Made by a program: the position numbers and the translations under genes. DNA of 64,000 nucleotides from Botryllus schlosseri. Its lineage: Eukaryota. Within the stretch, counting starts at the first letter, position 1, and every line of letters begins with the position of its first letter. A model generated the notes under the pieces. It searched no databases and was not told the origin of the DNA. It saw nothing but the letters and a program-made list of their open reading frames with translations. The stretch is from contig CM119386.1 in the NCBI GenBank assembly GCA_051294905.1, positions 20,584,001 through 20,648,000 on the forward strand, given 5' to 3'. Below, piece by piece: positions 2,643 to 24,535 of the stretch.

Positions 2643-4781
2643 CCGGGAATAAACTCCGCGGGGGCGTTGATGAGACCGTTGGCGAACAGTTCACCTTCGA
2701 TATCGTTGGCAAAGGTATTCTCTAGGTGTTGCGGCAGACCCTTCTTTGCTTTACCTGCAGAATTAGCATCATTAAGTAAGGATCAGTATGACAATACTGA
2801 GTGCGTGAGTGATCCGGTTATGAAGAGAGAATTAGGCTTCGAATCGAGTACTTAACTATCACATATGATGGCGTCGCCACAGTCCCAACGATGCAGAAAG
2901 CTCAAGTATGTACCTTTTATGCGACCTCAAAGAATACAATGGCAGTTCTACATCACATTAAAGATGATTTGGTAAATGACCAACGAATTTTGAAATCGGT
3001 GGATAAAATAATACGTCCAATATCTGCAAAGGTGACAAAAGTGGACAGGCGTCGTGCGTAATCTGAAGGTCGGAGATGTAGTTTGTATATCAAAAGAAAA
3101 TCGTATCCACGGAAACTTGGCGGAGTCGAATCCGTATAATCTCCAGAAAATGGGTTGGTCTGAAAAGCCAGGATACTCGAGGGATGAACAGACTCTATAA
3201 CTATCGGAAAGCCCACATGGAAAGGTCAATACACAAACTCATATCACTAGTTGCAGCAGACTCTCAGTCGGTTAAAACATAACGGTATAGTCGTTCTATT
3301 GAAACGTATTAAGTGTTGCGTTTACTTGGTATGGTGATAGTGGATGAATATTTTGTTAATTATGTATGCTTATCGTACGTATACGTGTCCATAGTAGTAG
3401 TTGGTGGTGTTGTTGTTGTCTGTGGATATGCATGGTGTTTGTCGACTACAATGGTCATTTACACCAGGCCAATATTAATCTTTTTTTTCGTAGCTGCCGA
3501 CTTGTAGCACGGCCCGCTTCTAAGCTTTAATAAGACGCTGCTTACACAGATGTCCATAGTTCCTAATATCCATGTATTTGTGGGTCGATCCCTGACACTG
3601 GGAGCCATTGTTATGTTCATTCGCTTACAAAACCACAATTATTTCGAATTGCATTTTCGTGGAAGCCATGTTATTGCAGGAATCTGCAGGAATATTTAAA
3701 TTTCAATTATAGGCGTCGCGGGATTCGTCTTTTATGTATGTCGATTGGACGTCCCACTTCAATGCAGTCTGGTTTGATGTTGGCGCGATGTTAGTTGCGA
3801 TGTGTCGACAGTCGGCAACAACGACCACGTTCGGGTCGCATGGGAGTAACAGCGACTAAAGTATGATTGCGACTGAAGTATGATTGCGAGAGAGATTTGT
3901 TTGTTTGATATTCATGGTCTGTCGACTACACTGTAAATCTAAAAGGTGGAAAAAATGGTAGGAAAATGGAGAAAGATACTTTCCCTCCATTTATCCACCG
4001 TATCTCCACCAGATATGGAGGAATTTAGAGGGTAGAAAGAGGGAGGAATCAATAGTCTACCATATTTGGTGGAAAACAATTATTGACATGGTGGAAATCA
4101 GAAATGACTGTTCGCAAACTGTCGTATTGCCCAATTAAAACATGACAGTCGATACTGGCTTATAGTTAATAACGTCATCAGACATGAATTTCGAGTCGAG
4201 TGTTGTTTTTTCACTCAATATAAAGTCATAGTCGCATACATTTTGGAATATTGGTAAAATAATTAATATTTCATTTACAAGTGGTTAAGTCAGTAGAGGG
4301 ATTAGTAAATTTGAAAATATCTGAATACTATTAATGGATTGTGATGATTATTTGGAGATCCTGCACGACCGTAGCATATCCAAAACCTTTAACGTATATT
4401 CTTATTGCCAATATCCTCACCAATGAACCGTGACCGGCGGTAATTCAGCATCCGGGACTCTGGCAATTTTGAATGCACGGGGAATCGGGGATATGCGCTC
4501 TCCGTCGTCAGTCAATCTGAGTTAGTCGGTCGACAGAGAAAGATATTTATATTCATTGATTGTGAGTTGATCACAATATGATTATTGTTGATTTTAGTTC
4601 ATAAGTAGCCTAATGTGATTTGCTTAATCGATTTCATATCAAGTACCGGTATCGCTTGTGACTAAAAATCCGGAACTAGTGCACTATACACCAACAATAC
4701 CCGTTCATGGTGATCACTTTATTGACTAAGTATTTTTACACGTCAACCTTTTTCTTTTATAATTCTCTCGAATTTCCATTT

Positions 4782-4980
4782 CATGACTCAGCAGATTTCC
4801 AGTTACGAGGTTTCATTTTTTTCCGTTTACGCCCATTACGTTAAATAATACAGTTAACACCTATTATAAACGATGCACTGCCTTTCATTTATGCTTCTTT
4901 ACATAACTAACTTACCATGACTTAGCATATTTCTAGTTACGAGGTTTCAGTTTTTTCCGTTTATGCCCATTACGTAAAAT
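4782..4980 (-). promoter_or_regulatory. Two ~134-bp-period direct repeats, enhancer-like, downstream of env2 of element A
   Basis: CATGACT(C/T)AGCA...AGTTACGAGGTTTCA...TTCCGTTTA(C/T)GCCCATTACG at ~4782 and ~4916; AP-1-like TGACTCA 4784-4790; minus-strand TATAAAA near 4755-4761 and AATAAA at 4718-4723. Confidence 0.5.
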
Positions 4981-5154
4981 ACTTCACTTGAAACCAATCA
5001 CAAACTATGCATCGCCGGGGTTATTTTTATATTCCCGATGCCTATCACAAGTTTACTTAAGAATTTCCCAAAGTTATAAAATTGCATCTCATACTCCCCT
5101 ATCCTAACTACATAACGAACTTACACCTAACTTCAAGAATCAATTCTCTTACCT

Positions 5155-8100
5155 TCAAATCTCGTTATCCTCTGCTGTGTTTCGTATTACCCTTATCGCC
5201 ATCCATTGACTTGTTCCGTTACGCCTCCTCGTGTTCCTCAGATGACTTAGGGTTCTACGCCGACGACATCTTATACAACCAACCCACAACACAATCACCA
5301 GAGCTATCAACCCTGTTACCACCAATATTACAACCACTGGTTCCATGATAGGTATCAGTTTCGCACCTTCCATAATAATCCTATCGATCAAGGATAATTC
5401 TCTTACCTTATATCCACCTTCCATCATCACCAGTTCGTGCAGCCATCGAGTATAGTTGTAGTCAACGAAATCTGTGGTTGTCTTCCCCGCGGTGGTTCTT
5501 GATATTCGGGAATACTCAGGAGCGGGTGTTCCCAAACTTTGGTTTTTCTGCCCAGGCGGTGGTGACGCGTCAGTCATCGTTGACTCCAAGGTAGTATTCA
5601 TCAGTTCGACACTCCTCGGGGACGAGTCGTCTTTGTCGTCTCCTGTTGAATACAAAGCAGTTGTTCCGGTACTTACCTTACGGTTGTGGTCCGGGCTTTG
5701 GTAGTCCGTTCCGATGTCGGTTCCGTCATCATCTCTGGAGTCCTGCAGCGCGTCTGCAGTGGTAATCGGATGCACTCGCGTTGTTGTGGACACCTCACCG
5801 CTGATTTTCGTCGTTCTTTCGGGTAGGTTACGTGGATTGGTTGGCAACTGTTGCTTCCAATGAGTCGAATAGGTTGGTTTGGCATTGTCATTTTCCCCCC
5901 TTTTTTTAGCCATCGATTGCGATCGCCAAGCTTGCACCAGCGTCGTTTTCATTCGCCATCCTAGAGTTAGAGATGGTAGGTGTCTCAGCGCTGTAGTCTT
6001 TGGTACTGTTGTTGTTAGCCGTTCAACGGTCACCAAATGTGCGACGTCGTCCTCCTGATCCCTTGGAATCTTGCTTGTTTCGGTATAGTTAGGTAGAGGG
6101 CTAGTCGGTATATAGGCAGTTCTATTCGCCTCAGGTGCAGTATTCCCGTCTACATCTCGATCGGAGGAAACCTGGTAGGGAACCGTAGTTCCTGCAAAAC
6201 CGGGCCAATCAGTCTCTTCTAACCTTTGGTCGGTTATTTTCGTTGGCGTGGTGGTCTCGTGAGTCATTTCTCTAGTTATTCTCGCCTCTACCGATTTCCT
6301 TTGTTTCGTCAGTTCTTTTCCCCGTTTCGTGATTACCTGGTGCGTGGGCGGGTACCTTGATAACGACATCTCTTCAGTGGCGGTCGTTACTCCTTCCCAA
6401 GTCAGATGCGGCGTCGGGAGACTGTTTGCTGGTTTCTCTTGCTCACTTGGTGTTACCCCATGTCCATTTTCCCAAGCTTCCATGGTCGTACTACCCACCA
6501 TCATCGAAGTAGTTTGCGGAACTTCGGTGGTCCATGTGGTCCTAACGCGATGGTTTCCACGGTCATCATTTGCGGTTAACATCACCGTTCGAGCGGTGTA
6601 TCTCTCCCCCGCATTATTTCTATGGGCATATGGCGTATAGACCAGGGCACCATCACAAAACGTCCCCCGATAGATCCATCGAGGCTGAAATAACTTTTCG
6701 CTCCCCACTTCTGCCTGAATCAGTTTTTGTGAGGCCATATACTTCAGAAGTATCGTATTCATTGATTTTGCTTGTTCTATTAATGTCGGTCGCAGAGTAA
6801 GGTTATACCTCATGGATAGCTCCTCAAGTTGTCCCCGTGAGACGGGTCTTTCTCGCCGCGTTTCTACGTCTTCTCTTATCCGGGCCTTTAGTTGCGACTG
6901 GCATTTATTTATTTCTTCCACGTAGTGTGCCCCAAGGCGGGATAGCCAGTTTCTAATGCCTCCTCGTCCATGTTCTTCGGGTGTCCCTCGAGACGGGGAT
7001 AGTATAAACGTTTCCCACCCTTTTGAAATCAAGCAGGAACTTTGGTTACCCATGGTTGGTAAAAGTATTTCCGTCCGCGTTCGGTTTTCAGGGGCAGCAA
7101 TTTGCATTGCACCTTGCCGAGGGTCCGCAAACACGGCCTGCCCCTCGAAAGGGTCGAATAATACTCTATTGAATAGTAAGGCTGTTTTGAGATCTCCAAC
7201 AGCCGTTGAACAAACTTGTCTATTTTCCTTTAGTCCGCACCGCGATCTATTATGCAAAAGAACTGGGTAAGAGTCATACATTGCCATGCCTGAAGGTTGG
7301 GGTCTTGCCATCGTGCGTAGGAATGCCGTATCGGTTTTTCGTCCGTCGAACATCACATGCCAATGTTCCGAATATGTCTCGTTCCTTGCTTGTAGCCATA
7401 CCAGATTCTCGCTTATCTTCGGCAGAGGAGCTCTGTCGGGCCATTGATTGCTAGAAAAGGTTCTCCGCTTATCCGGCGGGTTCCCAATAATACCGGGATC
7501 GACTTCCTGTATTACAAAATCTAGGGGCAAGAAATTCTCAACCGGTTGCTCCCCCATGAAGTAGCACTCTATACACATCACTCTACTTCGACGTTTTTTA
7601 TGAGCAACACAATGGCTGAATCTATTCTGTCCGATATCCCATCCTATATGACGCCCGAACTGATAGCGACAATTTGCTTCCACTGTTCCATATTGCTCCA
7701 ACAAGTTTATGATCATTGTCTTATATACGGTTAATCGTTGTAATGTCTCGAGGGGTAGAGAATGCAAGGCTCGGGTTTCTACGTACCTCCAGAGATGTAT
7801 CACTCCCAGTCTGCCGTTGCGTCGGTACTTTATTTTTTGAGTATAGTAGTCCGCAGGGTTCAGATCCGGTGATATCCACGACTCAGTCCTTCTGCACACA
7901 CACTCCCGTTCATACGCCCAGGTTTCGTTCCAATACCTGGCGTTTTGGGATCCTATGGATGATATGGGTGCCAGTAATTTGTATAAACTTTGCGGTGCGG
8001 CTTTCAACGGACCAAACGCCGAGTCGTCAACCTGTATCTGATAGTGACGTTGAATGTCCCTTCGAGGCCAGTCCCCTCCTAACATAAAAAGCCGTGACAA

Positions 8101-8298
8101 GGGAACTCTTTGCGGCTTTGGTGGGACGTCGAAAGGTATCCATCCCGTAAAATTAAAGTCGTCGACGGACCCCACGGTCATGGCAGATAAGGGTAGTAGG
8201 TTTTCGCCAGTTTGGGTTTTCACAAAACAAGCCCACAGGATTAACAGCAGCAATCTTTGTAGTCCTTTCCATTTGTACAGGTAGTTAATTATTGGCAT
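5155..8298 (-). CDS. Second envelope glycoprotein (type I membrane; Env-SU-like N-terminal domain, Thr/Ser-rich mucin-like stalk, C-terminal TM), 1047 aa
   Basis: Signal-like N-terminus (RLLLLILWACFV), Cys-containing ectodomain, Thr-rich region, TM VVVILVVTGLIALVIVLWVGCI, basic tail; homologue at 54969-59432. Confidence 0.85.
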   Translation of the reverse strand: MPIINYLYKWKGLQRLLLLILWACFVKTQTGENLLPLSAMTVGSVDDFNFTGWIPFDVPPKPQRVPLSRLFMLGGDWPRRDIQRHYQIQVDDSAFGPLKAAPQSLYKLLAPISSIGSQNARYWNETWAYERECVCRRTESWISPDLNPADYYTQKIKYRRNGRLGVIHLWRYVETRALHSLPLETLQRLTVYKTMIINLLEQYGTVEANCRYQFGRHIGWDIGQNRFSHCVAHKKRRSRVMCIECYFMGEQPVENFLPLDFVIQEVDPGIIGNPPDKRRTFSSNQWPDRAPLPKISENLVWLQARNETYSEHWHVMFDGRKTDTAFLRTMARPQPSGMAMYDSYPVLLHNRSRCGLKENRQVCSTAVGDLKTALLFNRVLFDPFEGQAVFADPRQGAMQIAAPENRTRTEILLPTMGNQSSCLISKGWETFILSPSRGTPEEHGRGGIRNWLSRLGAHYVEEINKCQSQLKARIREDVETRRERPVSRGQLEELSMRYNLTLRPTLIEQAKSMNTILLKYMASQKLIQAEVGSEKLFQPRWIYRGTFCDGALVYTPYAHRNNAGERYTARTVMLTANDDRGNHRVRTTWTTEVPQTTSMMVGSTTMEAWENGHGVTPSEQEKPANSLPTPHLTWEGVTTATEEMSLSRYPPTHQVITKRGKELTKQRKSVEARITREMTHETTTPTKITDQRLEETDWPGFAGTTVPYQVSSDRDVDGNTAPEANRTAYIPTSPLPNYTETSKIPRDQEDDVAHLVTVERLTTTVPKTTALRHLPSLTLGWRMKTTLVQAWRSQSMAKKRGENDNAKPTYSTHWKQQLPTNPRNLPERTTKISGEVSTTTRVHPITTADALQDSRDDDGTDIGTDYQSPDHNRKVSTGTTALYSTGDDKDDSSPRSVELMNTTLESTMTDASPPPGQKNQSLGTPAPEYSRISRTTAGKTTTDFVDYNYTRWLHELVMMEGGYKVRELSLIDRIIMEGAKLIPIMEPVVVILVVTGLIALVIVLWVGCIRCRRRRTLSHLRNTRRRNGTSQWMAIRVIRNTAEDNEI

Positions 8299-8380
8299 AT
8301 TAATTTAACGTGAAAATCTGTAATTCATATAGTTGTGTTTAGTTAAGCATGAGGGTTAAGAGAGCTTCGTCGGAGATTGG

Positions 8381-10966
8381 TTACCGTCGCACTATGGGCC
8401 TGGGCTTTACGGTGTAAGATGGTGTCGACGTTATATACATTGCAAGTTGGGCGTTAGTGTTCCGCCTTTGTACGCTAGATTTTAACTTGGGACAACATAG
8501 GCTGTGGTACCTGACACAACAGAATAAGATAATCACCGCACCCAGTACAAGTCCCAAGGGGAGGAGGATGGATCCGAGGCCCGAGAAAATGCCACTCAGC
8601 CCACTTCCAAATAGACCTCCAATTGCCCCGAGTCCCTTTTGTAGGAGGTTACCGGCACCGTTTCCGACCGATTCTATCAGACTTCCGGCACCGTTCGCCA
8701 TCTCTTCTATCGTTTTGCCAAAGTTCTTCATAAATTCTTCCCCCCCCCCAGCAAACTCGAAGGGGGCTACTGACACATTCTCGTAGCGCCAATCGGAGAT
8801 ATTTACGAACACACTTCGGTTCAGGTCTTCCTTCCATACCTGTATACTGAGATCCACTTCTTCTTGAGCCTGGTTCAGACGAAGCCTGTTGGCTCGGAGT
8901 TTACCACTGATGTCGTTTGTCTCATTCACATACGTATCTTTATAGGCAGATAACTGCTGAGCATGCTCCTGCACCCGCAATGTCCCTTTCCGAATCTGTG
9001 TAAGATAGACCTTACTCGAATCGAATATGGACTTTCCAGTCAAATTAGCCAATTCTTTCATGACCAAGCGGTCGACGGCAAGTTCAGCGTCGCTCACCTC
9101 TGTGAAACTTTGAAACTGAGCGAGGGTGATGGTAGCCTGCCGCAATATCATTTGTCGGTTTTTCTCCATCATCTTTTGCATCCACACCAGTCGTCTGTCC
9201 GTCAGTGATGCCCTCACCTCCATGTCTTCAACCAATCGGTCCAGCTTTTGTTGCTGCGCCGTTTGAATTCGAGAGAGTTCGTTTATCTTTCTTCCCAGCT
9301 CGACTGATCTTTCCGTAGCCTGGATCATTCTATCGTTGATTTGATTACTCAGGTTCTCTGTTTCTTTATGCAGTTGGGAGGATACAGTTGCGACAACAGC
9401 GACGACTGACACAACGGCAAAGATTAGTGCCAGTAGGCCGAAGAGGAATCGTTTACGTCTACGTTTCCTCCCAATCCTCCTATTATTGCGCGCGATATCT
9501 CCTTTTATTTCTATAGGACCTCCCGGAAAACGGGGTCGGTTATGCTCAGGGTCGAAGTGTACCTGATCCCAAAAGGCCGCCTTCAACTGAGGCCCCCCGA
9601 CCGGATCCTGACAGTCGCTACCACTTACCCGTTTCTGACACCTAGGATCATCTGCAACCAAAGAGGGGTGCTTTCGCCAAACAGGCAGTATGTCGTAGGG
9701 TGCGACTGGTCTTTCGGCAGGTCCGTCGAACAAATTATCCCAACCAAGCCCTTGGTCATCTTGACCCTTCCAGTTCGGTAAGGACGCCTGTATCCATCTA
9801 ATCCTTCGAGGAAAATTCGTGGTGGGCAAGTCCCCCCACTTACTCTTGTTCTGAGTCGGCCAAAGATTACACGATGGAGGATGCGCGATGTTGCGTAGGC
9901 CCTTACCGGATAAGGTTGGTGAGTGATGGACGACCTGCCAACGGTGTTCATAGTTTTCCTGGGTGATCAGTCCTGACGTAGCTCGGCAGTTCTGCATAGG
10001 ATGCCACTTACGTTCCCATGCGGATTCCGCACGAATGGTATCTATTTCTTGTATTATTATGTCTGCTTGGCTCGGTTCTAAAGCAGAAATTATCCCTGTG
10101 ATATCACAAAAAACACAGGTGCCGCGTGAACCTGGCCTTGACGACACCAGGCGTTTGTCTGACGTGCGAGTCTTCCAGTCGTAGGTTATTGAATATGTTC
10201 CGGCCCAAAGCACGTTACTCGGCCAACAATGCGCAATGCTCGAGCTACTGGCGTTATATTTATTCCATCGATCAACCCGAGTCCAGTTCCAGGTATCTTT
10301 TGTCATGCGCTCTGTCCTGCAAGTCGATCTCACCGCTGAGAACCCCGCGAATGCTCGTAACATGATCAACTTGAATTTGGTCATTGCCATTAAGGTATCG
10401 TTCACATGAGACCACTCGTCCACTTCAGCCCCAGCCTTCCATTTCTGCCTAGACGTTTCCCAGGTCTCGTCCCAAAACCACCGTATCCTGACCCCATGCC
10501 CTATTGGGCGTACGAACACAGTTTCTTGGTCAAGAACGGCAAAGGTTAGGTTCGGCGAAATTTCGCTTAGTTTTCGTTGGCATAGGCAGGTTCGTTCAAA
10601 ATCCCGTACATTCGACCAATATCGCCCTCGCGGGAACGCCATTTGCTGCAATGACACCCGTTCGGCCACCACGTAACCGAAAGATTCACTATGAAAGAGT
10701 GTTGGTCGCCTGTACACGTGACGATTCCCTGTCTTATTGAAAGCGCTCATTAGGTCGTAGGTTTCCCATTGCGTATCATTCAGCCGAACCCAGTCGTCAG
10801 GTAGTGAGCCGTTGAATTCACCCAGGGTACCCTGAGTAAAGGTTCGGGCCCTGTTTGCTACAGTATCTCCGGATCTTGGCACGAAGTCCGCCGCCTCAGA
10901 CAACAAGCAATCAGATGTGCAACTGAAACCAATAATGACAGGCAGAATATAAATAGCGTAGTCCAT
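8381..10966 (-). CDS. env: Envelope fusion glycoprotein, class I-like (SU / furin site / fusion peptide / heptad repeats / TM), ~861 aa
   Basis: True ATG at 10966 (MDYAIYIL aligns with MDHAAYIL of element C; the track start at 10993 is TTG). Signal peptide, N-glycan sequons, RKRRRKR|FLFGLLALIFAVV, long heptad region, Gly-rich membrane-proximal segment, TM, Cys-rich tail. Confidence 0.9.
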   Translation of the reverse strand: MDYAIYILPVIIGFSCTSDCLLSEAADFVPRSGDTVANRARTFTQGTLGEFNGSLPDDWVRLNDTQWETYDLMSAFNKTGNRHVYRRPTLFHSESFGYVVAERVSLQQMAFPRGRYWSNVRDFERTCLCQRKLSEISPNLTFAVLDQETVFVRPIGHGVRIRWFWDETWETSRQKWKAGAEVDEWSHVNDTLMAMTKFKLIMLRAFAGFSAVRSTCRTERMTKDTWNWTRVDRWNKYNASSSSIAHCWPSNVLWAGTYSITYDWKTRTSDKRLVSSRPGSRGTCVFCDITGIISALEPSQADIIIQEIDTIRAESAWERKWHPMQNCRATSGLITQENYEHRWQVVHHSPTLSGKGLRNIAHPPSCNLWPTQNKSKWGDLPTTNFPRRIRWIQASLPNWKGQDDQGLGWDNLFDGPAERPVAPYDILPVWRKHPSLVADDPRCQKRVSGSDCQDPVGGPQLKAAFWDQVHFDPEHNRPRFPGGPIEIKGDIARNNRRIGRKRRRKRFLFGLLALIFAVVSVVAVVATVSSQLHKETENLSNQINDRMIQATERSVELGRKINELSRIQTAQQQKLDRLVEDMEVRASLTDRRLVWMQKMMEKNRQMILRQATITLAQFQSFTEVSDAELAVDRLVMKELANLTGKSIFDSSKVYLTQIRKGTLRVQEHAQQLSAYKDTYVNETNDISGKLRANRLRLNQAQEEVDLSIQVWKEDLNRSVFVNISDWRYENVSVAPFEFAGGGEEFMKNFGKTIEEMANGAGSLIESVGNGAGNLLQKGLGAIGGLFGSGLSGIFSGLGSILLPLGLVLGAVIILFCCVRYHSLCCPKLKSSVQRRNTNAQLAMYITSTPSYTVKPRPIVRR

Positions 10967-11112
10967 TGAGGTGGTATAGGCGTCGGTCCCCAATGCATAG
11001 GCTTACTATTTTATATTGAATATGATTTAATTATTGTCTGCAAAAATAGAAACATACATTGTCCGGTTTGTGGCTAACTTCCTTTCTTTATTGCGAAAGG
11101 CTTCACTGGGCT

Positions 11113-12074
11113 TTACTGAGGATTACCTTGTGTGTCAGGAATCTGATCACTAGGGTCGTCATTATTATACCGCGGGTCCAGAGATATCGTTTTCAACAGA
11201 GCCCCAAACCTTTTTTTACGGGGGTATCTTCTCTTCCAAAGCCACTCCCCCACATAATCGGCTAGTAAATGACGTGCTAGACCCCTCGATCTGTGTAAAT
11301 GATATTTCAGCGAGCTCCAGCAAGCCTCTAAATCATTGGTATGAACGCCCTGGGCAGATTTAAACGTGGTGGCGTGGTCAACTGATCCATGTTTATAGCC
11401 CTGCCCCCAACTTTCAATGCCCTTATACGATGGATAGCCATCTGTCAGAATGGTTGAACCTCTGGCTACATTCTTAATTATAAGTCTTTTCAGAACGTCC
11501 GCTGTTCGGTCAGATGTGATCTCCACAAACATGTCACCGGTACCTCGGTCCAGGCCACCGAAAGCCCAGACAGCCTTCACTGCTTGTTGACCGCTACCAG
11601 CTGCCCGTTTCCGCTTGGCCAAGTGGGTTTCGTCCAGGATTACAGTTCGGCCAACCCCGCCTAATTTCCGTTTACGTCTTTGTATGTAAGCAGAGCACAT
11701 CTTGCGCAGTTGTCCAGACCATTCTACCGTCGTACGTGCGCTGATCTCGGCCTCATGGGCCATTTGAATTTGTAGAGAGTCTTGGGCCCAAAAATAACTT
11801 AATACTAGCAGCTGGGGCAATCCAAGTTTGCTCTTTGAAAAAAATGAGTACTTGCGGATAGTAGCAGTGGTCCTACAAGATGAGCACCTCCATCTCCATC
11901 CGTCCGAAATTCTCTCGGTAGTCCGTTCTTCCTTCATCCATCTTGAGCATTCTCTGCAAATCATTTGTTTTCTCAGTAGACCCCGGCTTCTTAAAAAAGG
12001 GATGCAATCGCGTGTATGGGGTAAGGCTCCCATTTCCACCAATCGCAGCACATTGTAATCCTCGACGAAGGAGT
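11113..12074 (-). CDS. Merlin/IS1595 (ISXO2-like) DDE transposase, probably expressed from a spliced mRNA
   Basis: Zinc ribbon CREC...WRWRCSSC; catalytic motifs VILDETH, ILTDGYPSY, VDH, HTNDLEACWSSLK. ORF-track start 12099 is TTG inside a polypyrimidine tract ending CAG at 12077-12075. Confidence 0.9.
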
Positions 12075-12161
12075 CTGAAAAGTAAATAAAAAAGTACAAG
12101 TTCCTTTAACGATCGATCACTCCCCAGCAGTTAAATCTCGACGGCAGCGTCACCCTGCATC

Positions 12162-15100: not shown

Positions 15101-15632
15101 GATCGCACGAGATCTCGTCATGTAGTGTTACTAAAGACAACTCTTCGTTTGCATTAGACGGAGTTTTGAATTCAGTCGTTATGTTCGGTAATTGTTGTAC
15201 CTGATCAATCCATTTTAACCCAATAATATTGAGAGGGACTCCTTTCCCGGTTGCAAATGGAACCGGTAGTCCATCGAAATCAATTATTACCAAGGAGTCA
15301 ACGTGGGAAGAGCCCCCTATGCCGCGTAATTTCATGTCTAGGGGTTGTCGCTCCTCCCAGCTTCGTGGGTATTTGGTCTTAACAACACTTTTCATTATTA
15401 AATTGGGGATGCTTCCCGTGTCGGCCAAGAATTTAGTTTCCGTTGTGGTGTCAACCAAATACAAGAGCCGACCGCCGAATAATTCCGTAAAGTCTGGCTG
15501 TAGTGGGTTATCCGGTGTATCAAGAAATGTAAATAGGGGTAGAGAAGCATTATGTACAGTTTTTGCGTGTTGGGGTAATAAGTTATCTGGGAGCTGATTT
15601 ACCGGATCAATCAGCACCCCCAGTCGTTTTTT
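12162..15632 (-). CDS. pol: Pol: aspartic protease, spacer, reverse transcriptase, RNase H, C-terminal Tpt1/KptA-like domain; no integrase
   Basis: FLADTGS protease motif; RT WRVVQNLQPLN, LLDLKKAYF, YIDD; Ty3/gypsy-type RNase H VETDASDVG...KELKAL...TDN...DGLSR; final ~167 aa match Tpt1 motifs; no HHCC or DD35E integrase. Entered by -1 frameshift from gag. Confidence 0.93.
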   Translation of the reverse strand, partial: KKRLGVLIDPVNQLPDNLLPQHAKTVHNASLPLFTFLDTPDNPLQPDFTELFGGRLLYLVDTTTETKFLADTGSIPNLIMKSVVKTKYPRSWEERQPLDMKLRGIGGSSHVDSLVIIDFDGLPVPFATGKGVPLNIIGLKWIDQVQQLPNITTEFKTPSNANEELSLVTLHDEISCDRRDGTRVGNSPCNAATDDGLMEAANQISVESARRSLLPAVAADASVEMAIATGADDGLVNTTNVERNLRETPSVETGIPAGTINEDVERGIPADVNKDLHEKTGPESSRGCTCPNNCNNSAQRCRTTATVMSNFPKGSNEAAIVGQPDVGPGASDKESGDFKMHVSPETGPPAEIESVGVTVGVGTHRVQRSDWIGRESPLTTKNLAPSPPTPKPRFSRDSHRPIIGPVTTYTLQQGTSLSVKTDLESLCAQSVALAKLPYKPPDLTTPENTIIADEVWKAVYEPFAAELEDLRGHLRAPQAMKYKCDIELRDPSTKPFVSGPYNLKGEGQAKALKEAVDNFLDLGIIEQGFAEWKLAIFVVPQKMNERQKQEDGWKQSWRVVQNLQPLNAAIKSIEVPPPLVPDVKQLAQGREVLSLLDLKKAYFHMDITERSKQYVGIAIKGMHVRWRKIVMGLKTAVALWSANMQECAVKPITEKYRQRMKQNGRSDEENATPMEAYIDDIFLSTKTVDDHLLLLRLVFEQLAKMKLTLSINKCFIGKRRANLLGATLTGKEIEVQPERIRALRELSPPRNIYELRGWIGALRYISEHIPELSLKLAKFDALTGKVPATRGKMTPVLWTEELLQDYKTAQAALDSAKVLYHLDPGLPIFVETDASDVGFGSVIFQTDVGEKPPFKEVYPIAYYSQKWVTPTAKAYDPCTKELKALKDSVEKWQSMLRALPFTIITDNMGVFGLLKRMTDEAKNPSPKPLIQRWLNHLSGFQIKEVIHLSTFQVFTSDGLSRSYWMEMAARDDDPHVWATLPGHKEFQQEKIQRTLMFHCRHEYCANSVDGYHPWEEVRGIIKDKLRQDLGITEIEDIMANCDRAVMSGEGLAAAHGHTKGMPPPYEEYLGDDMLYHTTTDEGARQIIDTQLHRMNRRFIHLSKINTTKARGRRTVLRMRANDLRRIGLRLLQSHNHEVILCEGPIPSGYILMENLA

Positions 15633-18484
15633 GAGAGTCTCAAGCCTTGTTCTAGTTCCTCATCCGTCCAATGCGAGGCGTCATAGCGACGTGGAGGACG
15701 GCGATATAGCGGTTCCGTCCAGGCCACTTGGCTATTGCCCTGGTTCGGTTGTTCAGGTGGGCCCTGAGGACCCCACTGATCCCTATCATGCCAGTGGGTT
15801 CTATCTCTATTTTTTGGCCTAGAGTCATAATAGGCCTCGCACAAGGCAGTTCTCTGTGTCAGAGAGGGAGAACCTTGGGTGGCAAGGTATCGGTCGAGGT
15901 CCGGGACCGTCAATATGTTATTCCTTGCAAGGAAAGGCTCCCAGTTGCGTTTTGTGGACTCCTTAACGCGTGGGGGTACCGGTCGTATTCGTTTGCGAAC
16001 TACCCAACCTAAGGTATCATCCTTGGCAATCACCTCCTCATTTAGCCAAAGCACGAATTTTGCCACGCAATTACGGGATTGGTGTCCCGGGGCCTTACAA
16101 TAATAACATACGGATAAGGACTGCCCCTGAGGGGGGTTCAGATACAAGCCTAGAGGGGCGAAAATGTTGGGGTTCCCAAGAAAATTATACCTCTCACCTT
16201 GGCTCTCCGCGATGCGGAGGGCTTCCTGACTGCTAGACGGCGTGATTTCCTGGCTGTCCCCGCCGATTCCAGAGTCCTGCGTATTCATCACCCGAGGTCT
16301 CCGGTTCGAAGTACTTGGCCCCTGACTTGTTTGAGGAGATCTGGAGTTCCGTGCTGGTGGAACGCTCGGTCCATTCGATGCGTTGCGCCCATTTTGTGTT
16401 CGGGAAGGTTTGGCCCTGGTAGCCGGGCCCTGTCTGCCAAATCCATTTCCACTCATTACATTGGTAGGAAAACGGTTGGTCTTTGCGCCGCGAGGAGGGC
16501 CACGTCGTGGCTGCGAAGCTTGCCCGACGCCGACGGGCTGCCGTGGCGACATATTCCCCGTCGGTCTGGGTGGTGTCCCCCCGATCATGTGCAGAGGTTG
16601 TTGGGGTGAGGGTGGTTGCACCATCGGAAGTGGTGGTGTAGTCGGTGGAGGAGGGGTGTTTATTCGTTCATCTCCACCCCCGTGAGTAGGGTAACTGTGC
16701 ATCATGGGTCCTGCAGGCTGAACATTATATATGTGTACAGGCGGTAGGGGCGACATTGCTTCACGCGTCTTTCTGGCCTCCCGAGTGGTGGGTCGTACCT
16801 CTTGTTCATCCAAGAACTCAGAATTCCAGTACAGCTGCAAATCCTCTGCCACCTCTTGCCAGGACCTGCTATCCCATCCCCGCATCAGCAGTCTAAGTGC
16901 TTCTGGTAATCGTTGTCTTAGGTTGCGGAAAAGTCGCAGCCCATCCGGATTCTCGTTGATTTCCGCCTCCATATCTATCTCTAGTTGCTTTAGGGCGCTA
17001 TTCAACAGCGGAAGAGGTTCGTCTTCCCACTGATAATTCCTCCGGAAGTCGTTGATGACTTTTTCATTGTTAACCAAGCCTTGCGGGTTGGATAGCGACA
17101 ATGATTTCATGACCGAAACCCATTTTGCATTTCCCGAGTTGGTGTTGAAGAAATTCCCTAGCTGATTAGCTTGTTTGAGGCGACCCGCACTTCTCAACTT
17201 CTTCTGCATGGCATTAGCCAGGATGATATCAGTATCAGTGCCGCCCTCACCGTGTCGTATACGCCTCATCGTATTAGCCATCCACTTTAGAAGTGGCATG
17301 TCCCCAGGGTCCATCATTAGCTGTAGCATCTCCTTTTCGGACTGGAACCTTTCGGGCGTAGTCAACACCGGGTTTACGGCATCATTCCGTGGTTGTTCTC
17401 GCGGAAGTCTCGATCTACCTTCGCTTTCTCTTGGGGTAGATGTGTATCGAGGTAATCTGAGGTATTCAGCGATGTCCGAAATATCCTCTGCGGGTTCGCT
17501 TGGGTTGGGCCGACCAGAGTCCCGTTGAAGCGTCCGCGTGGTTTCCCGAATGGCCTCCCGTGCCTCCGCTATTTGTCTACCCAATCTGTCCAATTGGGCG
17601 TCAGTATCTTCCCCCGAGTCTTCAGGCTCTTCGCTTTCGCCTTGTCGGTAGTTCGTTCTCCCTTCCTGAAAGGTAACGCGCCTTGTTGGAGTGCTGGCCG
17701 CACCTTGTGTCCTGGTCCGGGTTCCTTCGGCTGCTCGTTGATCGTCGAGCCATGCGCCGAGCCGTTCTCGAGCGTGTGCATAGTCCTCGTCTGAATCTGG
17801 TCCAGTGTCTGTTCCGGTTCCACTCAGCTGAAATAGACTGGGTGTATCGACTAGGCTCCCCCTTCGTCTTTCGGGGCGTGTCCCATTCCAAACTGGAAAG
17901 CATGGAGTCGTTTTTGGATGAGAATCTGATGGCGACTTCGGCTTGGAACCTGGCAACGTAGGGTAGACTGTCGTTACGGTATGGCAATCCAGGCCCTTTT
18001 GGACTGTAAACGTGGGCAGTGGCGCTGTTGCCCTGGACGATTTCCCAACGGGCGGATCATACGCCGGGGGAGGTGCTGTAGCCATTACGGACAGGGGAGA
18101 AGGTGGTGGTGGTTTACTTTCAACCACTTGGGCATGGGCTTTGCCCAGTTCAAATTCCGATTTCAGAATCTCACTGAGGACTTCAGTGGAGACTTTCCCG
18201 CTAACCTTCGAAGTTGCATCGCATACTGCTTTGAGGTCGGCTTGAGCTCGCCTGACTTCTTTCTTGGCTTTTTCCAGCCCCTTCATTGTCTCGGGCAGAG
18301 TTGATTTGACTTCTTTTAGTACCTTCGTTTGATCAGCCACGTCTTTTGCCAACTGTCTTTCTTGTTGTCTGACGCCTTCGTGGCGTTTTTGCGTGGCTTT
18401 CAGTAGCTTGATGCCCTGCTCGAGCTCGCCTGCCGCCTTTGACGACTTATTCTTCTTTTTAAATAATTTTAGCATTTTTCGCAT
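15611..18484 (-). CDS. gag: Gag polyprotein, 957 aa
   Basis: Upstream of and overlapping pol; basic N-terminus, coiled coil, PPAY and YPTL late-domain-like motifs, single CCHC knuckle CYYCKAPGHQSRNC. Confidence 0.9.
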   Translation of the reverse strand: MRKMLKLFKKKNKSSKAAGELEQGIKLLKATQKRHEGVRQQERQLAKDVADQTKVLKEVKSTLPETMKGLEKAKKEVRRAQADLKAVCDATSKVSGKVSTEVLSEILKSEFELGKAHAQVVESKPPPPSPLSVMATAPPPAYDPPVGKSSRATAPLPTFTVQKGLDCHTVTTVYPTLPGSKPKSPSDSHPKTTPCFPVWNGTRPERRRGSLVDTPSLFQLSGTGTDTGPDSDEDYAHARERLGAWLDDQRAAEGTRTRTQGAASTPTRRVTFQEGRTNYRQGESEEPEDSGEDTDAQLDRLGRQIAEAREAIRETTRTLQRDSGRPNPSEPAEDISDIAEYLRLPRYTSTPRESEGRSRLPREQPRNDAVNPVLTTPERFQSEKEMLQLMMDPGDMPLLKWMANTMRRIRHGEGGTDTDIILANAMQKKLRSAGRLKQANQLGNFFNTNSGNAKWVSVMKSLSLSNPQGLVNNEKVINDFRRNYQWEDEPLPLLNSALKQLEIDMEAEINENPDGLRLFRNLRQRLPEALRLLMRGWDSRSWQEVAEDLQLYWNSEFLDEQEVRPTTREARKTREAMSPLPPVHIYNVQPAGPMMHSYPTHGGGDERINTPPPPTTPPLPMVQPPSPQQPLHMIGGTPPRPTGNMSPRQPVGVGQASQPRRGPPRGAKTNRFPTNVMSGNGFGRQGPATRAKPSRTQNGRNASNGPSVPPARNSRSPQTSQGPSTSNRRPRVMNTQDSGIGGDSQEITPSSSQEALRIAESQGERYNFLGNPNIFAPLGLYLNPPQGQSLSVCYYCKAPGHQSRNCVAKFVLWLNEEVIAKDDTLGWVVRKRIRPVPPRVKESTKRNWEPFLARNNILTVPDLDRYLATQGSPSLTQRTALCEAYYDSRPKNRDRTHWHDRDQWGPQGPPEQPNQGNSQVAWTEPLYRRPPRRYDASHWTDEELEQGLRLSKNDWGC
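15626..15632 (-). promoter_or_regulatory. -1 ribosomal frameshift heptamer A AAA AAC
   Basis: X XXY YYZ heptamer in the gag frame five codons before the gag stop; pol is in the -1 frame; identical heptamer at 50408-50414 in element B. Confidence 0.85.
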
Positions 18485-18528: not shown

Positions 18529-18864
18529 TTATTGGCTAGGGGAAGTACCGTTACGAAGTAGATTACCCACGGTCGCGGTTTTGTTGTTTTCGATCACTCG
18601 CCCTTGCGTTGTAGGTGCGGAATACCTTCCGAAGATAACTGGGTCGGTCTCGTTGGCGATTGCCACAGCAAATCCGTTACGTGGGACAGTAAGTGCTTCG
18701 GCCGTTGTAGTGACGTCGTTAGAGAGACCTTCAGGGTTTGTAGTAGGAAAGAATACCGGCACGAGGTGTACGTAGACCGACGCCAACGTTATTAGCAGAG
18801 ATATAGCAGAAGTGATTACTGTCACTCCGAGCACGATTCTCACGAGGGTCGTCTTCGCGCACAT
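18529..18864 (-). CDS. Small leader ORF, putative type II membrane glycoprotein, 111 aa
   Basis: ATG start just downstream of the PBS; hydrophobic anchor at aa ~7-39; sequons NET, NKT, NGT; stops 45 nt before the gag ATG. Confidence 0.6.
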   Translation of the reverse strand: MCAKTTLVRIVLGVTVITSAISLLITLASVYVHLVPVFFPTTNPEGLSNDVTTTAEALTVPRNGFAVAIANETDPVIFGRYSAPTTQGRVIENNKTATVGNLLRNGTSPSQ

Positions 18865-18893
18865 TAATAGGTCACTGTTTTTTCACCGGAAAA

Positions 18894-18911: not shown

Positions 18912-19120
18912 GTAATGTCTTTATAGTGCAGCTCCGATAACGATTGTTATGCGAGTCGTCTACACTTGGTTCGGATTATTTCGCGGTGAGGAGTTGACCT
19001 TCTATTGCGCTGTATTGTCCAGACGACGTCCGTGGATGTTGATTGAAGCAGCAGTAGTTGCAGTAGTGGTACCTTTCAGTATCAGACAATGACCCTTAGG
19101 TCCAGAGTTCTAAACTAGTC

Positions 19121-19128
19121 TTATATAA
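19121..19128 (-). promoter_or_regulatory. TATA box candidate for the element A genomic RNA
   Basis: TTATATAA about 180 nt downstream (minus sense) of the enhancer-like array and about 210 nt upstream of the PBS. Confidence 0.5.
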
Positions 19129-19305
19129 CGTGTAATTAAGCCTTAATACAACCAAATACTCCAATAAATATCATGCAGACAGAATGAGGTATCTAAGCAA
19201 AACTCGGTTAAATTGGCACATAGAATATCCATCAATTATAACACAAGATAAAGCTTAAACCTATTCATATTCATGCACGATTAAATGTATTTTAAATACT
19301 CCAAG

Positions 19306-19521
19306 GTTTGTTTTCGCATACAAACTATGCGACGGCCTTTCCTGCCGAAGTGGTATCTTTCAGGGTTTGTTAACACATAATTAATGTGACGGCCTTTCCT
19401 GCCGTAAAATCTCATAGGTTTGTTTACACATATAATGCATGTGACGGCCTGTCCTGCCGTAAAGCAGCTCCGAGGTTAGTTTACACATCTAATGAATGTG
19501 ACGGCCTTTCCTGCCGTAAAG
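19306..19521. repeat. Four ~56-bp tandem repeats, enhancer-like
   Basis: Unit GGTTTGTTTACACAT...ATGTGACGGCCTTTCCTGCCGTAAA; cores at ~19330, 19387, 19441, 19498; contains forkhead-like TGTTTAC and ETS-like TTCCTG. Confidence 0.85.
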
Positions 19522-21239: not shown

Positions 21240-21615
21240 CTATGGTAGCACCTTAAACGTTTTAGAATATCTGTCGGTCTTCACCAGGGTCTTCCACCGA
21301 GGTACCGACCTATGGTACAATAGTAGCCCTAAACTTTTGGAATCTATGTCGGCCTCCTCCAAGGTCTACCACCGAGGTACCGATCTATTTTATTTAGTAT
21401 AGTCCTAATCGTTTTGGAAATTGTGTAGGTCTTCTCCAGGGTCTACCACCGAGGTACCTATCTATTTTATTTAGTATAGTCCTAATCGTTTTGGAAATTG
21501 TGTAGGTCTTCTCCAGGGTCTACCACCGAGGTACCTATCTCTATTGCACGTAGCCCTAATCGTTTTGGAAAGTTAGTCGGTCTTCTCCAGGGTCTACCAC
21601 CGAGGTACCGATCTT
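21240..21615. repeat. Five ~74-77-bp tandem repeats
   Basis: CCACCGAGGTACC at ~21295, 21369, 21446, 21523, 21597, each preceded by CCTAA...TTTTGGAA...GGTCTTCTCCAGGGTCT-like sequence. Confidence 0.9.
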
Positions 21616-21757
21616 ATCCAGCCTTTTAAATCTATTTTCATATTTTAAAATTCGCAATTCTTATGAATTCAAACAATCTCCGTTATCATGATAAATACTG
21701 GGGTCTGTTAACTATCGTAATTCTTGCACTTGATAAATTTTTACGAATCGAAAAGCT

Positions 21758-22264: not shown

Positions 22265-22281
22265 ACTAATATTTTAGCGTT

Positions 22282-22572
22282 TCATATTGATGCAATAAAC
22301 CTTAAATATGCGCATATAGAAATGTTTAAATCGACCACTATCGCTTCATTGGACATTTTTCCGAGTCTTCGAAGCCTAGGACCAGTCCAACTACTATGAT
22401 ATTTTTCACGTACTGCAAGTTGGGTTCTCGCATTATAGAACTCATATAGCAGCGCTGTTGCGGTCGACCGGCTGCATGTATCACGCGCGGTGACAGTTTC
22501 CGGCAGCTTACAGTTGAGCGCAACACTGACTGAATAAATAAACAGCCACTGATAGCGTTCAAAATGAAGCAA
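22282..22572 (-). CDS. Possible accessory ORF, 96 aa
   Basis: Lies immediately upstream of and co-oriented with 21758-22264; no recognisable motif. Confidence 0.25.
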   Translation of the reverse strand: MLHFERYQWLFIYSVSVALNCKLPETVTARDTCSRSTATALLYEFYNARTQLAVREKYHSSWTGPRLRRLGKMSNEAIVVDLNISICAYLRFIASI

Positions 22573-24535
22573 CCCAGTGAAAGCACCGGAGATCTATTGC
22601 CCCCCACCAAGGCTTTTTTTATTGTTTTATAAATTTTTTTTTAAATGATTTTGTACTCCGTATAACTTTTATCTTTGGTTTTCGCTTTCGTAATTTTTTA
22701 TATTATCTTTACATCATTCAGAATTTATTCATTTTTGTAATTTTTTTCACAATAGGTTTCTATTTTTAGGATTTTTTTCGTAGTGGGTATTATACTATAC
22801 AACACGCGTATATACACAATTTAATATATCTCTCCACCCCAGCCTTCCCCCCTTTCTTTTACAGGAATTGTCAGCGGTCACATTCCTTCCATCATACTAA
22901 CAACGTGTCGAATGGGAGGCGAGGTTTTCCCATAGTTAACCAAAGTGTCATACTGGATAGGAAGTGCCGAGAGTCGTGCTCATTATTTATCTACCTAGCT
23001 CCATCACGTGAGCACCTGATAGGCTGAATTTTTCCCCATTAATATTAACCATCAGACACTCAAAAGAAGACACCTCCTACCATTCGGTAAGTGCCAAGCG
23101 GTGTCATTTATATCCATAGAGTGAGGGGGGTGCCGAGAGACAGGGATGGGAGTATGCCTTCCACATAAATATACATTACTATTTACAGATCAATTTGCGG
23201 TTTAGATATAATCAATAATAATAAATTTCATATCCATCTGAGATTCTCAAGGTGTCCTGTGTTCGTCACGATCGAAATTTCACAAAAAATAATAATATAT
23301 ATACATGTAATATATAAGCAGCAATTTAAAATACTTTAAAGAGTCTCGTAGTTATATCTCCAAACTCGCGGAGCCGACTGTAGCGAGGACCAAATAAAAA
23401 GGGAAGAAATGTAAGTAAATTTAAAACTCAAATATAATTAATAGATTAGCAAAAACATTTCATAATGAAAATAGGGTGATTTTTCACGGGGCAGGGGGTC
23501 TGGGAACGTTACCCGCCTTTTGATACTATCTTCTCCTTCTTGTGACGACTTTTCGGGTGTAAGGGCTATTGCAATTGGACCACATTACCCTCATAAATGA
23601 TTGTGGCGTTAAAACAAATCATTCACTACAGCGTGCGTCCTCAATTGCATTTATACCCTGTGATTTAATATAAACTCAACACAACAGACAACAGACGTAG
23701 ACAATACAGTTTCTATGCTTATTCGAAAAATCATTTTTGTATATAAGGTGGGAATTGCGCAGCCTTGTATTCGAGTAAATGAACTATCCGTAGTCCCCGA
23801 GATGTTTTTTCAGGGGCACACTTAGCGATTCAATCACAATACAATGTCTTTTACTTTCTGGAACTTAACATAAATTTTGTGTATCGGTATAATAAATCCG
23901 TGTATATAATAAATGAAATACAAGAATACAGCTTCTACTTTAGAGCTATTCTCCAGTTACACTGTATTCTGACTCAAATTCTTCCGTTAAGTTGAGCTAG
24001 ACAGGGATGCCGAATTATTACGCTTGTCCTAATTCCCTATCAGCTATAGCCTTATTAATTTAGTTGTCTCGGCTTGTCTGGTAGTCTAATCACCACCAGT
24101 CCGTTTGCCCTATTCAGCAGCTTTCGAGGCGTGATCGCACGTTTCCTTAGGCAGAGATTGCGGCATTTAGAACGTCATGGAATGATGATATCTATACGTG
24201 GGCTTATGATACGATAGGCTGTTTTTCAACAAAGCTATGGTCAGCGATGATTCCACACAAAGGTTCGCAGCACATACCGTTCAATACAGACCTAGCCGCC
24301 CCTATCTCTGAAGTAAGTAACAAATAGTGAATGCATTATGACCCCAACCCGCCATCACTAAGGTTGGATCAAAATTGATCCCAGGCGAACAAATATGCGA
24401 TCCATATTTTTATGTGCGGTCGGATTGTTCTTGCCATCCATGTAATCCTAAATGGTGCTATACACTATCAATCAGAATAATACCTTTGCTGATTATCGCT
24501 AATACCTCGCCGCTATGAGCTATTGATTGAGCATG

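Follow-up and report, generated by a model that had tools for sequence, protein, structure and literature searches.

The window analysed here, 64,000 nucleotides (nt) of Botryllus schlosseri DNA (assembly GCA_051294905.1, contig CM119386.1, positions 20,584,001 to 20,648,000 of the forward strand), contains a retrovirus-like element of about 14 kb, which we call element A, together with the rearranged remains of a relative, element B. We think it quite probable that element A belongs, as an intact copy, to a separate and apparently undescribed clade of retrovirus-like elements that possess neither an integrase nor long terminal repeats (LTRs). The core of this clade is formed by gag, by pol in the -1 frame, which encodes protease (PR), reverse transcriptase (RT), RNase H (RH) and a domain resembling the RNA 2'-phosphotransferase Tpt1, and by an envelope gene (env) of furin-type, class-I-like character. 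To this core the sub-lineage represented in the window adds a transposase gene (tnp) of the IS1595/Merlin DDE type between pol and env, and a mucin-like paralogue of env. The genes of both the core and the sub-lineage are under purifying selection.

Reverse-transcribing viruses and retrotransposons are classed largely by their mode of integration, that is, by the use of an integrase, a tyrosine recombinase, an endonuclease or none of these. The present lineage combines a Gypsy-like Gag-Pol with the absence of both integrase and LTRs, and one of its branches carries a captured DNA-transposon transposase. The open-access literature that we searched contains no description of the lineage, and reports no retroelement with a Tpt1-like domain or with an IS1595 transposase. 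If our reading is true, it introduces a new architecture among Ortervirales-like elements, a natural case of a retroelement that either does without an integrase or replaces it, and a new family of class-I-like envelope proteins; it would also link the KptA/Tpt1 domains of marine-invertebrate RNA viruses to retroelements, and so suggest that hosts exert a common pressure on the ends of viral RNAs. Should the DDE enzyme serve in integration, the retroviral integrase would have been replaced independently by a protein not homologous to it. For annotation, the consequence is that elements of 12-14 kb built in this way will escape LTR-based finders.

Gene content of element A

Element A lies on the minus strand at approximately 4.7-19.1 kb and comprises five long, uninterrupted open reading frames (ORFs) in a row, in the order gag, pol, tnp, env1 and env2. 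The G+C content of this coding block is 48-54%, against 38-44% in the flanks. Pfam profiles match gag (marginally), pol and tnp, and no Pfam family was found for the products of env1 and env2. ORF and Pfam scans recovered every part of the element named in a preliminary description of the window, each in its place on the minus strand and with all long ORFs unbroken. That description had drawn the limits of the element at 4700-22600; the 3' limit fits an AATAAA polyadenylation-type signal (4718-4723, minus strand) situated about 435 nt past the env2 stop, and nothing supports a 5' limit at 22600. From its position, the AATAAA is likely to be the 3' limit of the transcription unit.

The pol ORF (12162-15617, minus strand) encodes 1151 amino acids arranged as protease, linker, RT, RNase H and Tpt1-like domain. 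The protease is recognisable by DTGS at residue 66 and GIGG at residue 99, and the RT by YIDD at residue 672, while RNase H occupies residues 793-956 approximately; the linker between protease and RT, at about residues 170-430, is not conserved. Among Pfam families, Pol of element A matches RVT_1 at E=4e-15 and RT_RNaseH_2 at E=3e-19, giving a PR-RT-RH order in which the RNase H is of the Gypsy type. The integrase families rve and Integrase_H2C2 match neither element A, element B nor any other family member, whereas the ordinary Gypsy matches carry them, and the Pol alignment contains no further conserved block in which an integrase could be hidden.

In the position that the integrase occupies in retroviruses, the C-terminus of Pol (12180-12695, minus strand; about residues 975-1146) instead carries a Tpt1/KptA-like domain with the RNA 2'-phosphotransferase fold. 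Individual sequences match Pfam PTS_2-RNA at E=4e-5 (element A), 1e-6 (element B), 5e-7 (P0096) and 4e-6 (P0101), and the domain of element A on its own matches solved RNA 2'-phosphotransferases at E=1e-4. With a profile of ten family members, all 12 of the 12 matches in PDB are RNA 2'-phosphotransferases of the Tpt1/KptA/TRPT1 group, the best at E=7e-17. Judged by these profile comparisons, the homology to Tpt1 and the fold that goes with it are real. Four residues in the order Arg, His, Arg, Arg are essential in the Tpt1 enzymes of yeast, E. coli and Runella (PMC6097658); seven aligned family members conserve the Arg-His pair and the last Arg. The C-terminus of P0096, a family Pol of 967 residues with RT, RNase H and Tpt1-like domain, runs on into an Exo_endo_phos fragment, which is probably a gene model extending into a neighbouring LINE.

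The product of gag (15611-18484, minus strand; 957 residues) has a helical core, modelled at 74-92 on the predicted local distance difference test (pLDDT), and a zinc knuckle of the form CX2CX4HX4C at residues 793-806 (nt 16108-16067). The four ligands C793, C796, H801 and C806 are invariant across relatives, the Pfam zf-CCHC match is marginal, and a Gag profile run against PDB ranked retroviral nucleocapsids at the top (E=0.003-0.05). The gag and pol ORFs overlap by 49 nt (15611-15659, minus strand), pol being in the -1 frame relative to gag both in element A and in four relatives. The overlap in element A includes a slippery heptamer, A_AAA_AAC (15632-15626), with a predicted 13-bp hairpin beginning 2 nt downstream; among the relatives, contig L002 has T_TTA_AAC, contigs L001, L008 and L003 have GGAAAAC just before the gag stop, and a conserved peptide in the Pol frame starts right at that stop. 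Given the common -1 frame, the slippery motifs and this peptide, programmed -1 frameshifting is the best reading of how Gag-Pol would be made.

The transposase gene (11113-12105, minus strand; an ORF of 328 codons) matches Pfam DDE_Tnp_IS1595 at E=3e-13, and its counterpart in element B does so at E=5e-10. We aligned the transposases of A and B with those of five relatives from Logan assemblies, 59-65% identical to A, and with four distant homologues; the DDE triad (D156, D220 and E258 in the numbering of A) and two CxxC pairs forming a zinc ribbon are invariant throughout. The nearest homologues outside such elements are proteins about 30% identical, found on eukaryote-like contigs. The ORF starts 57 nt past the pol stop and has the same place in element A, element B and contigs L009 and L010. 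Between copies the proportion of synonymous differences (pS) is saturated at 0.82-0.89, with nonsynonymous differences (pN) at 0.23-0.28; A and B differ at pN 0.24 and pS 0.89, and the ratio of nonsynonymous to synonymous rates (dN/dS) between B and L010 is 0.08.

None of these four copies has an AUG before the conserved zinc-ribbon region of tnp. All four have a polypyrimidine tract followed by CAG, resembling a 3' splice site (12075-12100, minus strand, in element A), with exactly 17 nt in every case between it and the first conserved codon of tnp. A second such tract with CAG (11038-11060, minus strand) stands about 71 nt before the env1 ATG, in the same place in all four copies, and a weaker acceptor-like motif lies about 20 nt before env2, near 8318. 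We infer that these motifs are shared 3' splice sites, that a single transcription unit would give rise to spliced subgenomic RNAs for tnp, env1 and env2, and that the start codon of tnp would be supplied by an upstream exon. A scan for terminal inverted repeats (TIRs) with target-site duplications (TSDs) of 8-9 bp, around tnp in element A and around the tnp-bearing module of element B, gave chance-level matches only. Occupation of the same site in four copies, purifying selection, and the fixed acceptor motif, together with the absence of TIRs and of an AUG, argue that tnp is an integral gene rather than a nested transposon. Expression of the transposase as a frameshift fusion with Pol was considered and ruled out, since stops lie in the 57-nt gap and L009 does not keep the same frames.

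Downstream of tnp, env1 (8381-10966, minus strand) is an ORF of 870 codons for a class-I-like fusion glycoprotein, characterised by eye and with simple profiles. Its product has a signal peptide, a Cys-rich surface subunit or ectodomain, 14 N-glycosylation sequons, a polybasic site (residues 509-518) with a hydrophobic segment directly after it, long predicted helices, a transmembrane segment (residues 798-835) and a short tail. The class I-type features, namely the signal peptide, the polybasic site with its hydrophobic segment, the helices and the transmembrane segment, are conserved in seven homologues, and homologues of Env1 are present on L001, L002, L008, L009 and L010; the predicted layout is thus class-I-like. 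Between A and B, dN/dS of env1 is about 0.10. The last gene, env2 (5155-8298, minus strand; 1047 residues), encodes a mucin-like type I membrane glycoprotein whose N-terminal half is paralogous to the surface subunit of Env1; it carries 13 N-glycosylation sequons, a stalk rich in Ser, Thr and Pro (31-33%) at residues 600-950 and a transmembrane segment at residues 974-1012. In relatives that have no transposase, the intact Env (P0062 and P0079; 1301-1333 residues) devotes its N-terminal third to two CUB domains, which are followed by several hydrophobic segments and then by an Env1-like part; cleavage of such an Env may release one protein for attachment and another for fusion, a division of function parallel to that of Env2 and Env1 in the window.

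Ahead of gag lie an upstream ORF of 111 codons (18529-18864, minus strand), with a hydrophobic N-terminal segment at residues 5-41, and a leader or promoter-like region (18919-19127, minus strand) with TATA-like boxes at 19127-19120 and 18925-18919 and a candidate region for a primer-binding site (PBS). Four tandem repeats of 54-57 nt (19299-19521, minus strand), just upstream of the TATA-like box, are enhancer-like in placement and of uncertain membership in the element. A further tandem array, of five 77-nt units (21260-21639), is situated about 3 kb upstream of gag. The 3' untranslated region contains two copies of a repeat of about 100 nt (4782-5016, minus strand). Repeat searches found no inverted repeats bounding element A, and no tRNA genes with which a PBS could be compared were found in the window or in 18 loci. 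With Rfam, neither the gathering threshold nor a limit of E<=1 yielded a known ribozyme or any other RNA family; ribozymes would have fitted the idea of a circular RNA acted upon by Tpt1.

Relatives, insertion ends and element B

The combination of pol, tnp, env1 and env2 recurs on an independent and deeply diverged contig; the preliminary description had counted its absence from every other locus as a refutation, and by this test the description stands. Logan contig L009 (7 kb, run SRR25569784) carries pol, cut by the contig end, followed by tnp, env1 and env2 on one strand, with amino acid identities to element A of 72%, 58%, 32% and 25% respectively. Between copies of the element pS is saturated and pN is 0.17-0.29, and dN/dS is 0.08-0.16 where it can be measured; purifying selection is strong on tnp and env1.

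HMMER searches, both word-indexed and exhaustive, with Pol of element A as query delineated a family comprising some 30 clusters, formed at 50% identity, all at least 36% identical to the query and clearly separated from the next-best matches, which are ordinary Gypsy polymerases with integrase. Members derive from metagenome assemblies of ENA and JGI, two of them (L011 and L012) labelled marine, and also from eukaryote-like contigs, as long as 4 Mb and rich in transposons of animal type, on which hAT, piggyBac and LINE genes and many dispersed intact copies of the elements are found; single clusters contain 86 members (gag) and 215 members (Pol). L001, L002, L008 and L030-L033 have the order gag, pol (PR-RT-RH-Tpt1) and env, with CUB domains at the start of Env and no transposase. 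The Tpt1 domain is missing from branch P0005, and the arrangement with Tpt1 in place of an integrase is conserved in at least eight diverged lineages. From the relatives without tnp, together with P0005, it follows that the conserved core is gag-pol-env without integrase, and since homologues of Env1 follow pol in those relatives, env is part of the retroelement itself. What the sub-lineage in the window has introduced is the transposase and the second env. The preliminary description had ascribed the whole architecture to the lineage; the integrase-less Pol with its Tpt1-like domain is indeed a family trait, while tnp and the second env, being absent from relatives, are not. Giant proteins of 2000-3500 residues that ranked just below the family were rejected as a sister lineage by inference from two matches that were scanned (1219 and 1568 residues, each matching over multiple stretches), which proved to be gene models that span several copies of ordinary Gypsy elements and sum their scores.

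Some relatives have additional ORFs. A conserved antisense ORF occurs in L008 (11798-13498, minus strand; 566 codons) and in L002 (4191-6059, minus strand; 35% identical), where it carries a MADF DNA-binding domain; it stands after env in the former and before gag in the latter, positions that coincide in a circular or tandem unit, and neither the L001 type nor the window has it. Downstream of env, L001 (18062-20625) and L030-L033 contain two or three paralogous ORFs of about 130-150 codons and other small ORFs, which occupy the 2.5-4 kb that separate env from the 3' end; insertions of the L001 type differ in the number of these copies, and their lengths accordingly range over 12.1-13.8 kb. 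The L001 type also has a 167-nt tandem duplication in the non-conserved pol linker.

The ends of the L001 type were mapped in a single assembly, from L030-L033, which are four independent insertions with nothing broken, and from the tandem array L001. The 5' end is 148 nt ahead of the ATG of gag and consists of an 8-nt motif, a stretch of 24 nt and then a sequence starting with TGG, which we take to be complementary to a tRNA 3' end and hence PBS-like; this sequence is absent from element A. The 3' end, identical in 3/3 cases, is formed by the same 8-nt motif about 29 nt past an AGTAAA. The 5' ends are ragged, with 8, 6 or 4 nt in front of the 24-nt stretch, or else with 40 additional nt of the element's own 3' end, and tandem copies join head-to-tail through one shared 8-mer or 18 nt of filler. 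None of the four insertions has LTRs, the 8-nt terminal repeat being all that the ends have in common, and no target duplications were found at L032 and L033. The chromosomal copy therefore has the form of a genomic RNA, with a short repeat at both ends, and not that of a retroviral provirus. Such ends fit host end-joining or recombination at the terminal repeat, and equally circular or concatemeric intermediates, rather than the action of a DDE enzyme, and they agree with the absence of an integrase. The box at 18919-18925 of element A and the AGTAAA before the terminal repeat of the L001 type have a TAAAGAC core in common, and in the L001 type the motif with this core could be both a promoter box, in tandem copies, and a poly(A) signal.

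Element B, the second copy in the window, is in pieces. A pol remnant (47191-50384, minus strand) retains RT, RNase H and the Tpt1-like domain, over which it is 56% identical to element A, with one frame break; a gag remnant (50408-50950, minus strand), truncated at its 5' side, matches residues 772-953 of the Gag of A. Head-to-head with these, on the plus strand at 51160-59432, lies a module of tnp, env1 and env2 (338, 862 and 1487 codons) in which all three ORFs are intact. The second Pol and the second transposase-env-env module of the preliminary description are accordingly both present; as a co-linear second copy of A, element B is ruled out by the opposite strands of its head-to-head pieces, in addition to the broken pol and truncated gag. 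An inversion of the gag-pol piece in place would restore the order of element A. Neither a TIR nor a TSD bounding the module was found above chance in the scan. On contig L010, tnp and env1 are preceded by about 210 nt that are common to B, and the contig ends where the gag remnant of B begins.

Other features of the window lie outside element A. A non-LTR retrotransposon at 26179-29967 (plus strand) has an ORF1 with a coiled coil and a Baculo_FP_2nd-type domain, followed by an Exo_endo_phos endonuclease and an RT divided over two ORFs. To the left of the pol remnant of B, a 363-codon ORF at 44607-45698 (plus strand) encodes a type-1 RNase H (PF00075, E=6e-16) and probably belongs to another retroelement. 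Two pairs of inverted dispersed repeats lie outside A and near B, namely 23845-24044 with 63588-63790 (78% identity) and 207-294 with 44115-44202 (76%). In element orientation the former pair falls upstream of the gag of A and downstream of the env2 of B; it is most likely an unrelated repeat resembling a short interspersed element or a miniature inverted-repeat transposable element, and, less probably, a shared non-coding part of elements A and B. Downstream of the env2 of B, tandem arrays occupy 59765-59962 (99 nt, two units) and 60413-61042 (63 nt, about ten units), with no similarity found between them or with the array at 21260-21639. Three ORFs of 184-188 codons at 61722-63555 (plus strand) follow env2 of B and share its strand; a weak paralogy links two of them (E=7e-5), and none was found to be similar to the accessory ORFs of relatives.

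Proposed expression and integration, and alternative explanations

Beyond membership of a distinct clade, the elements could represent a family-level group of unrecognised enveloped reverse-transcribing viruses of marine invertebrates that lack integrase and LTRs, possess a Tpt1-derived end enzyme and, in one branch, use an IS1595/Merlin DDE transposase made from a spliced RNA as integration enzyme. This fuller reading we hold tentatively, at somewhat less than an even chance; by its genes, element A is virus-like and a candidate enveloped virus. On the main reading, that of a distinct clade, element A would be transcribed from a promoter near 19.1 kb into one genome-length RNA ending at the AATAAA at 4.72 kb. 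Gag and, by -1 ribosomal frameshifting, Gag-Pol would be made from this RNA, and Tnp, Env1 and Env2 from spliced subgenomic RNAs. Reverse transcription would be primed by a tRNA, as suggested by the PBS-like sequence 24 nt inside the 5' end of the relative, on an RNA with a very short terminal repeat only (8 nt in the L001 type). The Tpt1-like domain may act on a phosphate of the viral RNA, the primer or the cDNA end, either removing a 2'-phosphate or ADP-ribosylating a 5'-phosphate, in the service of RNA repair or of end protection against host nucleases. Env1 would fuse membranes and Env2 would attach. Relatives without tnp would enter chromosomes without target duplication, for instance through end-joining by the host or through recombination at the terminal repeat, which would also produce head-to-tail tandems, and in the sub-lineage of the window the captured transposase probably took over or assists integration.

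A number of results weigh against the main reading. The role of the transposase in integration is pure inference, and relatives reach dozens of copies without a transposase, as the gag cluster of 86 and the Pol cluster of 215 attest. The middle essential Arg of Tpt1 is replaced by Ala, Gly, Ser, Met or Asn in 7/7 aligned family members, so the classical activity cannot be assumed. Three search methods found no flanking direct repeats that could be LTRs of element A, the scan of its flanks for TIRs with TSDs gave chance-level matches only, and the 5' leader and 3' end have in common one 11-mer and several 8-mers, which is not above chance; with its ends thus not located, the completeness of element A as a mobile unit is unproven. 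Copy B is rearranged, and identities are incongruent between copies, Pol of A being 72% identical to L009 and 56% to B, and Env1 of A 70% identical to B and 32% to L009, which implies that modules recombine. A Foldseek search of PDB with the Gag model returned nothing at E<1, leaving a capsid fold of the CA/Arc-like type unconfirmed, and the hairpin 3' of the slippery site is no better than in shuffled sequence (z = -1.0). The AlphaFold2 model of Env1 (pLDDT 36) was too poor for a fold search, and a profile of Env1 against PDB gave sub-threshold matches (E=0.08-0.9), mostly to influenza HA2 and one to a coronavirus spike helix. No family member was found among the viral contigs of IMG/VR.

The absence of an integrase from the entire family could also mean that element A is the endogenous copy of an episomal, pararetrovirus-like but enveloped animal virus, comparable to caulimoviruses or hepadnaviruses, which would replicate with no need of integration and be integrated accidentally through host DNA repair, with a transposase that has another role, such as genome processing or regulation, or is a passenger. 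The best RT match among solved structures is that of cauliflower mosaic virus, and the insertions of relatives, with no LTRs or TSDs, short redundancy, ragged 5' ends, filler, and tandems in which one repeat is shared, are what circular or concatemeric DNA would be expected to leave. Against this, Gag-Pol appears to be made by -1 frameshifting, as in retroviruses and Metaviridae, and not as a separate Pol; one relative has dozens of dispersed intact copies in a single assembly, more in the manner of an element that transposes; four insertions have their ends grouped at one site and not randomly permuted; viral-contig collections (IMG/VR) yield nothing; and tnp is under strong purifying selection with a conserved acceptor-like motif. 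We regard such an episomal origin as unlikely, while giving it some weight. A separate provenance for the tnp-env1-env2 cluster, as a mobile or domesticated host module lying beside gag-pol so that element A would be a juxtaposition of two entities, is suggested by the intact module of B next to a broken gag-pol on the other strand, by the tnp-env1 of L010, whose common upstream stretch ends exactly at the start of the B gag remnant, and by the incongruent pol and env identities. It accords poorly with the Env1 homologues that follow pol in relatives without tnp, with the same order and strand in A and L009, with a tnp that has no AUG and needs an upstream exon, with the lack of any TIR or TSD bounding the B module, and with copies that diverge as those of a multi-copy element and not as a single host locus; we consider it very improbable.

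The least probable account, to which we attach hardly any weight and which is largely refuted, makes element A an ordinary Ty3/Gypsy (errantivirus-like) LTR element that lost its integrase and LTRs by decay and into which a Merlin transposon was inserted or misassembled. The PR-RT-RH order, Gypsy-type RNase H, zinc knuckle and downstream env are all Metaviridae-like, and Gypsy polymerases are the nearest database matches outside the family. Decay is nevertheless hard to reconcile with the five intact ORFs of element A, with the conservation of Tpt1 for integrase in no fewer than eight diverged lineages, and with full-length insertions of relatives that have intact genes and no LTRs. An inserted or misassembled Merlin copy would likewise not be expected to keep one position in A, L009, B and L010 while divergence reached saturation, under purifying selection and with neither TIRs nor AUG, and an ordinary Gypsy element scores 3-4 times higher against Ty3 than does the RT here.

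Comparison with known reverse-transcribing elements

Among solved structures, the RT-RH of element A scores 66 bits with the RT of cauliflower mosaic virus (8R0S; PMC11363490), 49 with the foamy-virus PR-RT and 47 with Ty3; the corresponding scores are 70, 59 and 58 bits for family member P0003, and 119, 84 and 207/160 bits for P0162, an ordinary Gypsy Pol. These scores, which are not a phylogeny, suggest that the RT of the family is deep, about equidistant from Ty3, foamy virus and cauliflower mosaic virus, with a slight lean towards the integrase-less caulimoviruses.

With the Metaviridae (Ty3/Gypsy, in particular the errantivirus-like elements) the family has in common the CX2CX4HX4C knuckle, the -1 frameshift between Gag and Pol, the PR-RT-RH order with Gypsy-type RNase H, which has no tether, an env downstream of pol and, in a relative of A, a tRNA-type primer site. 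It departs from them in having neither integrase nor LTRs, in the Tpt1-like domain at the C-terminus of Pol and in RT-RH scores to Ty3 of 47-58 bits, compared with 160-207 for an ordinary Gypsy Pol; element A has, in addition, the DDE transposase gene and a second env. The Caulimoviridae resemble the family in their integrase-less PR-RT-RH, the absence of LTRs, the best-scoring solved RT and the tandem chromosomal copies (seen in a relative), the margin of that RT over those of foamy virus and Ty3 being small. In contrast to them, the family comes from animal or marine sources, joins Gag and Pol by frameshifting where caulimoviruses have separately translated ORFs, and possesses envelope genes and the Tpt1-like domain; Pfam scans of the window and the relatives gave no match to a movement-protein family.

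Hepadnaviral linear DNA is of unit length, has a terminal redundancy of a few nucleotides and integrates without target duplication. The absence of an integrase, the redundancy of a few nucleotides at the ends of unit-length DNA and, for hepadnaviruses, the envelope are accordingly points of likeness between the family and the Hepadnaviridae and nackednaviruses; unlike these, the family has no terminal-protein domain, possesses a protease, a Gypsy-like RT-RH and a tRNA-type primer site, and has a genome four times larger. DIRS, Ngaro and VIPER elements likewise have another integration route in place of the integrase and no classical LTRs; the family differs in that no tyrosine recombinase and no inverted or split direct repeats were found, and in the presence of protease, env and the Tpt1-like domain. 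Recognised groups without an integrase were, as of 2025, only the Caulimoviridae, Hepadnaviridae, nackednaviruses and DIRS (PMC12440569). Troyka and the Kuafuorterviruses, the lokiretroviruses and Odin are, like the present family, recently recognised deep lineages of virus-like retroelements of animals, and differ from it in that all have an integrase and LTRs; Troyka, moreover, has no env and a knuckle of the form CX2CX8-10HX4C (PMC12440569, PMC11673190). Within the open-access literature searched, the suggestion of the preliminary description that the architecture matches no described family was borne out.

The transposase and the Tpt1-like domain also have parallels elsewhere. The transposase of element A has the N-terminal zinc ribbon and DDE triad of Merlin/IS1595 DNA transposons, from which it is set apart by the absence of TIRs and 8-9-bp TSDs, by its location between pol and env, and by an acceptor-like motif in place of an AUG of its own. 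The KptA domain was found to be uncommon among viruses of eukaryotes in a survey of 21,191 viral proteomes, which mentions no retroelement; the survey located it in the polyproteins of two RNA viruses of marine invertebrates, Beihai picorna-like virus together with Botrylloides leachii nidovirus (PMC9503650). These are positive-strand RNA viruses, whereas the domain of the family is attached to RT and RNase H and is without one essential Arg; in both settings, a domain of the Tpt1/KptA fold is carried inside a viral replicase polyprotein from a marine-invertebrate source.

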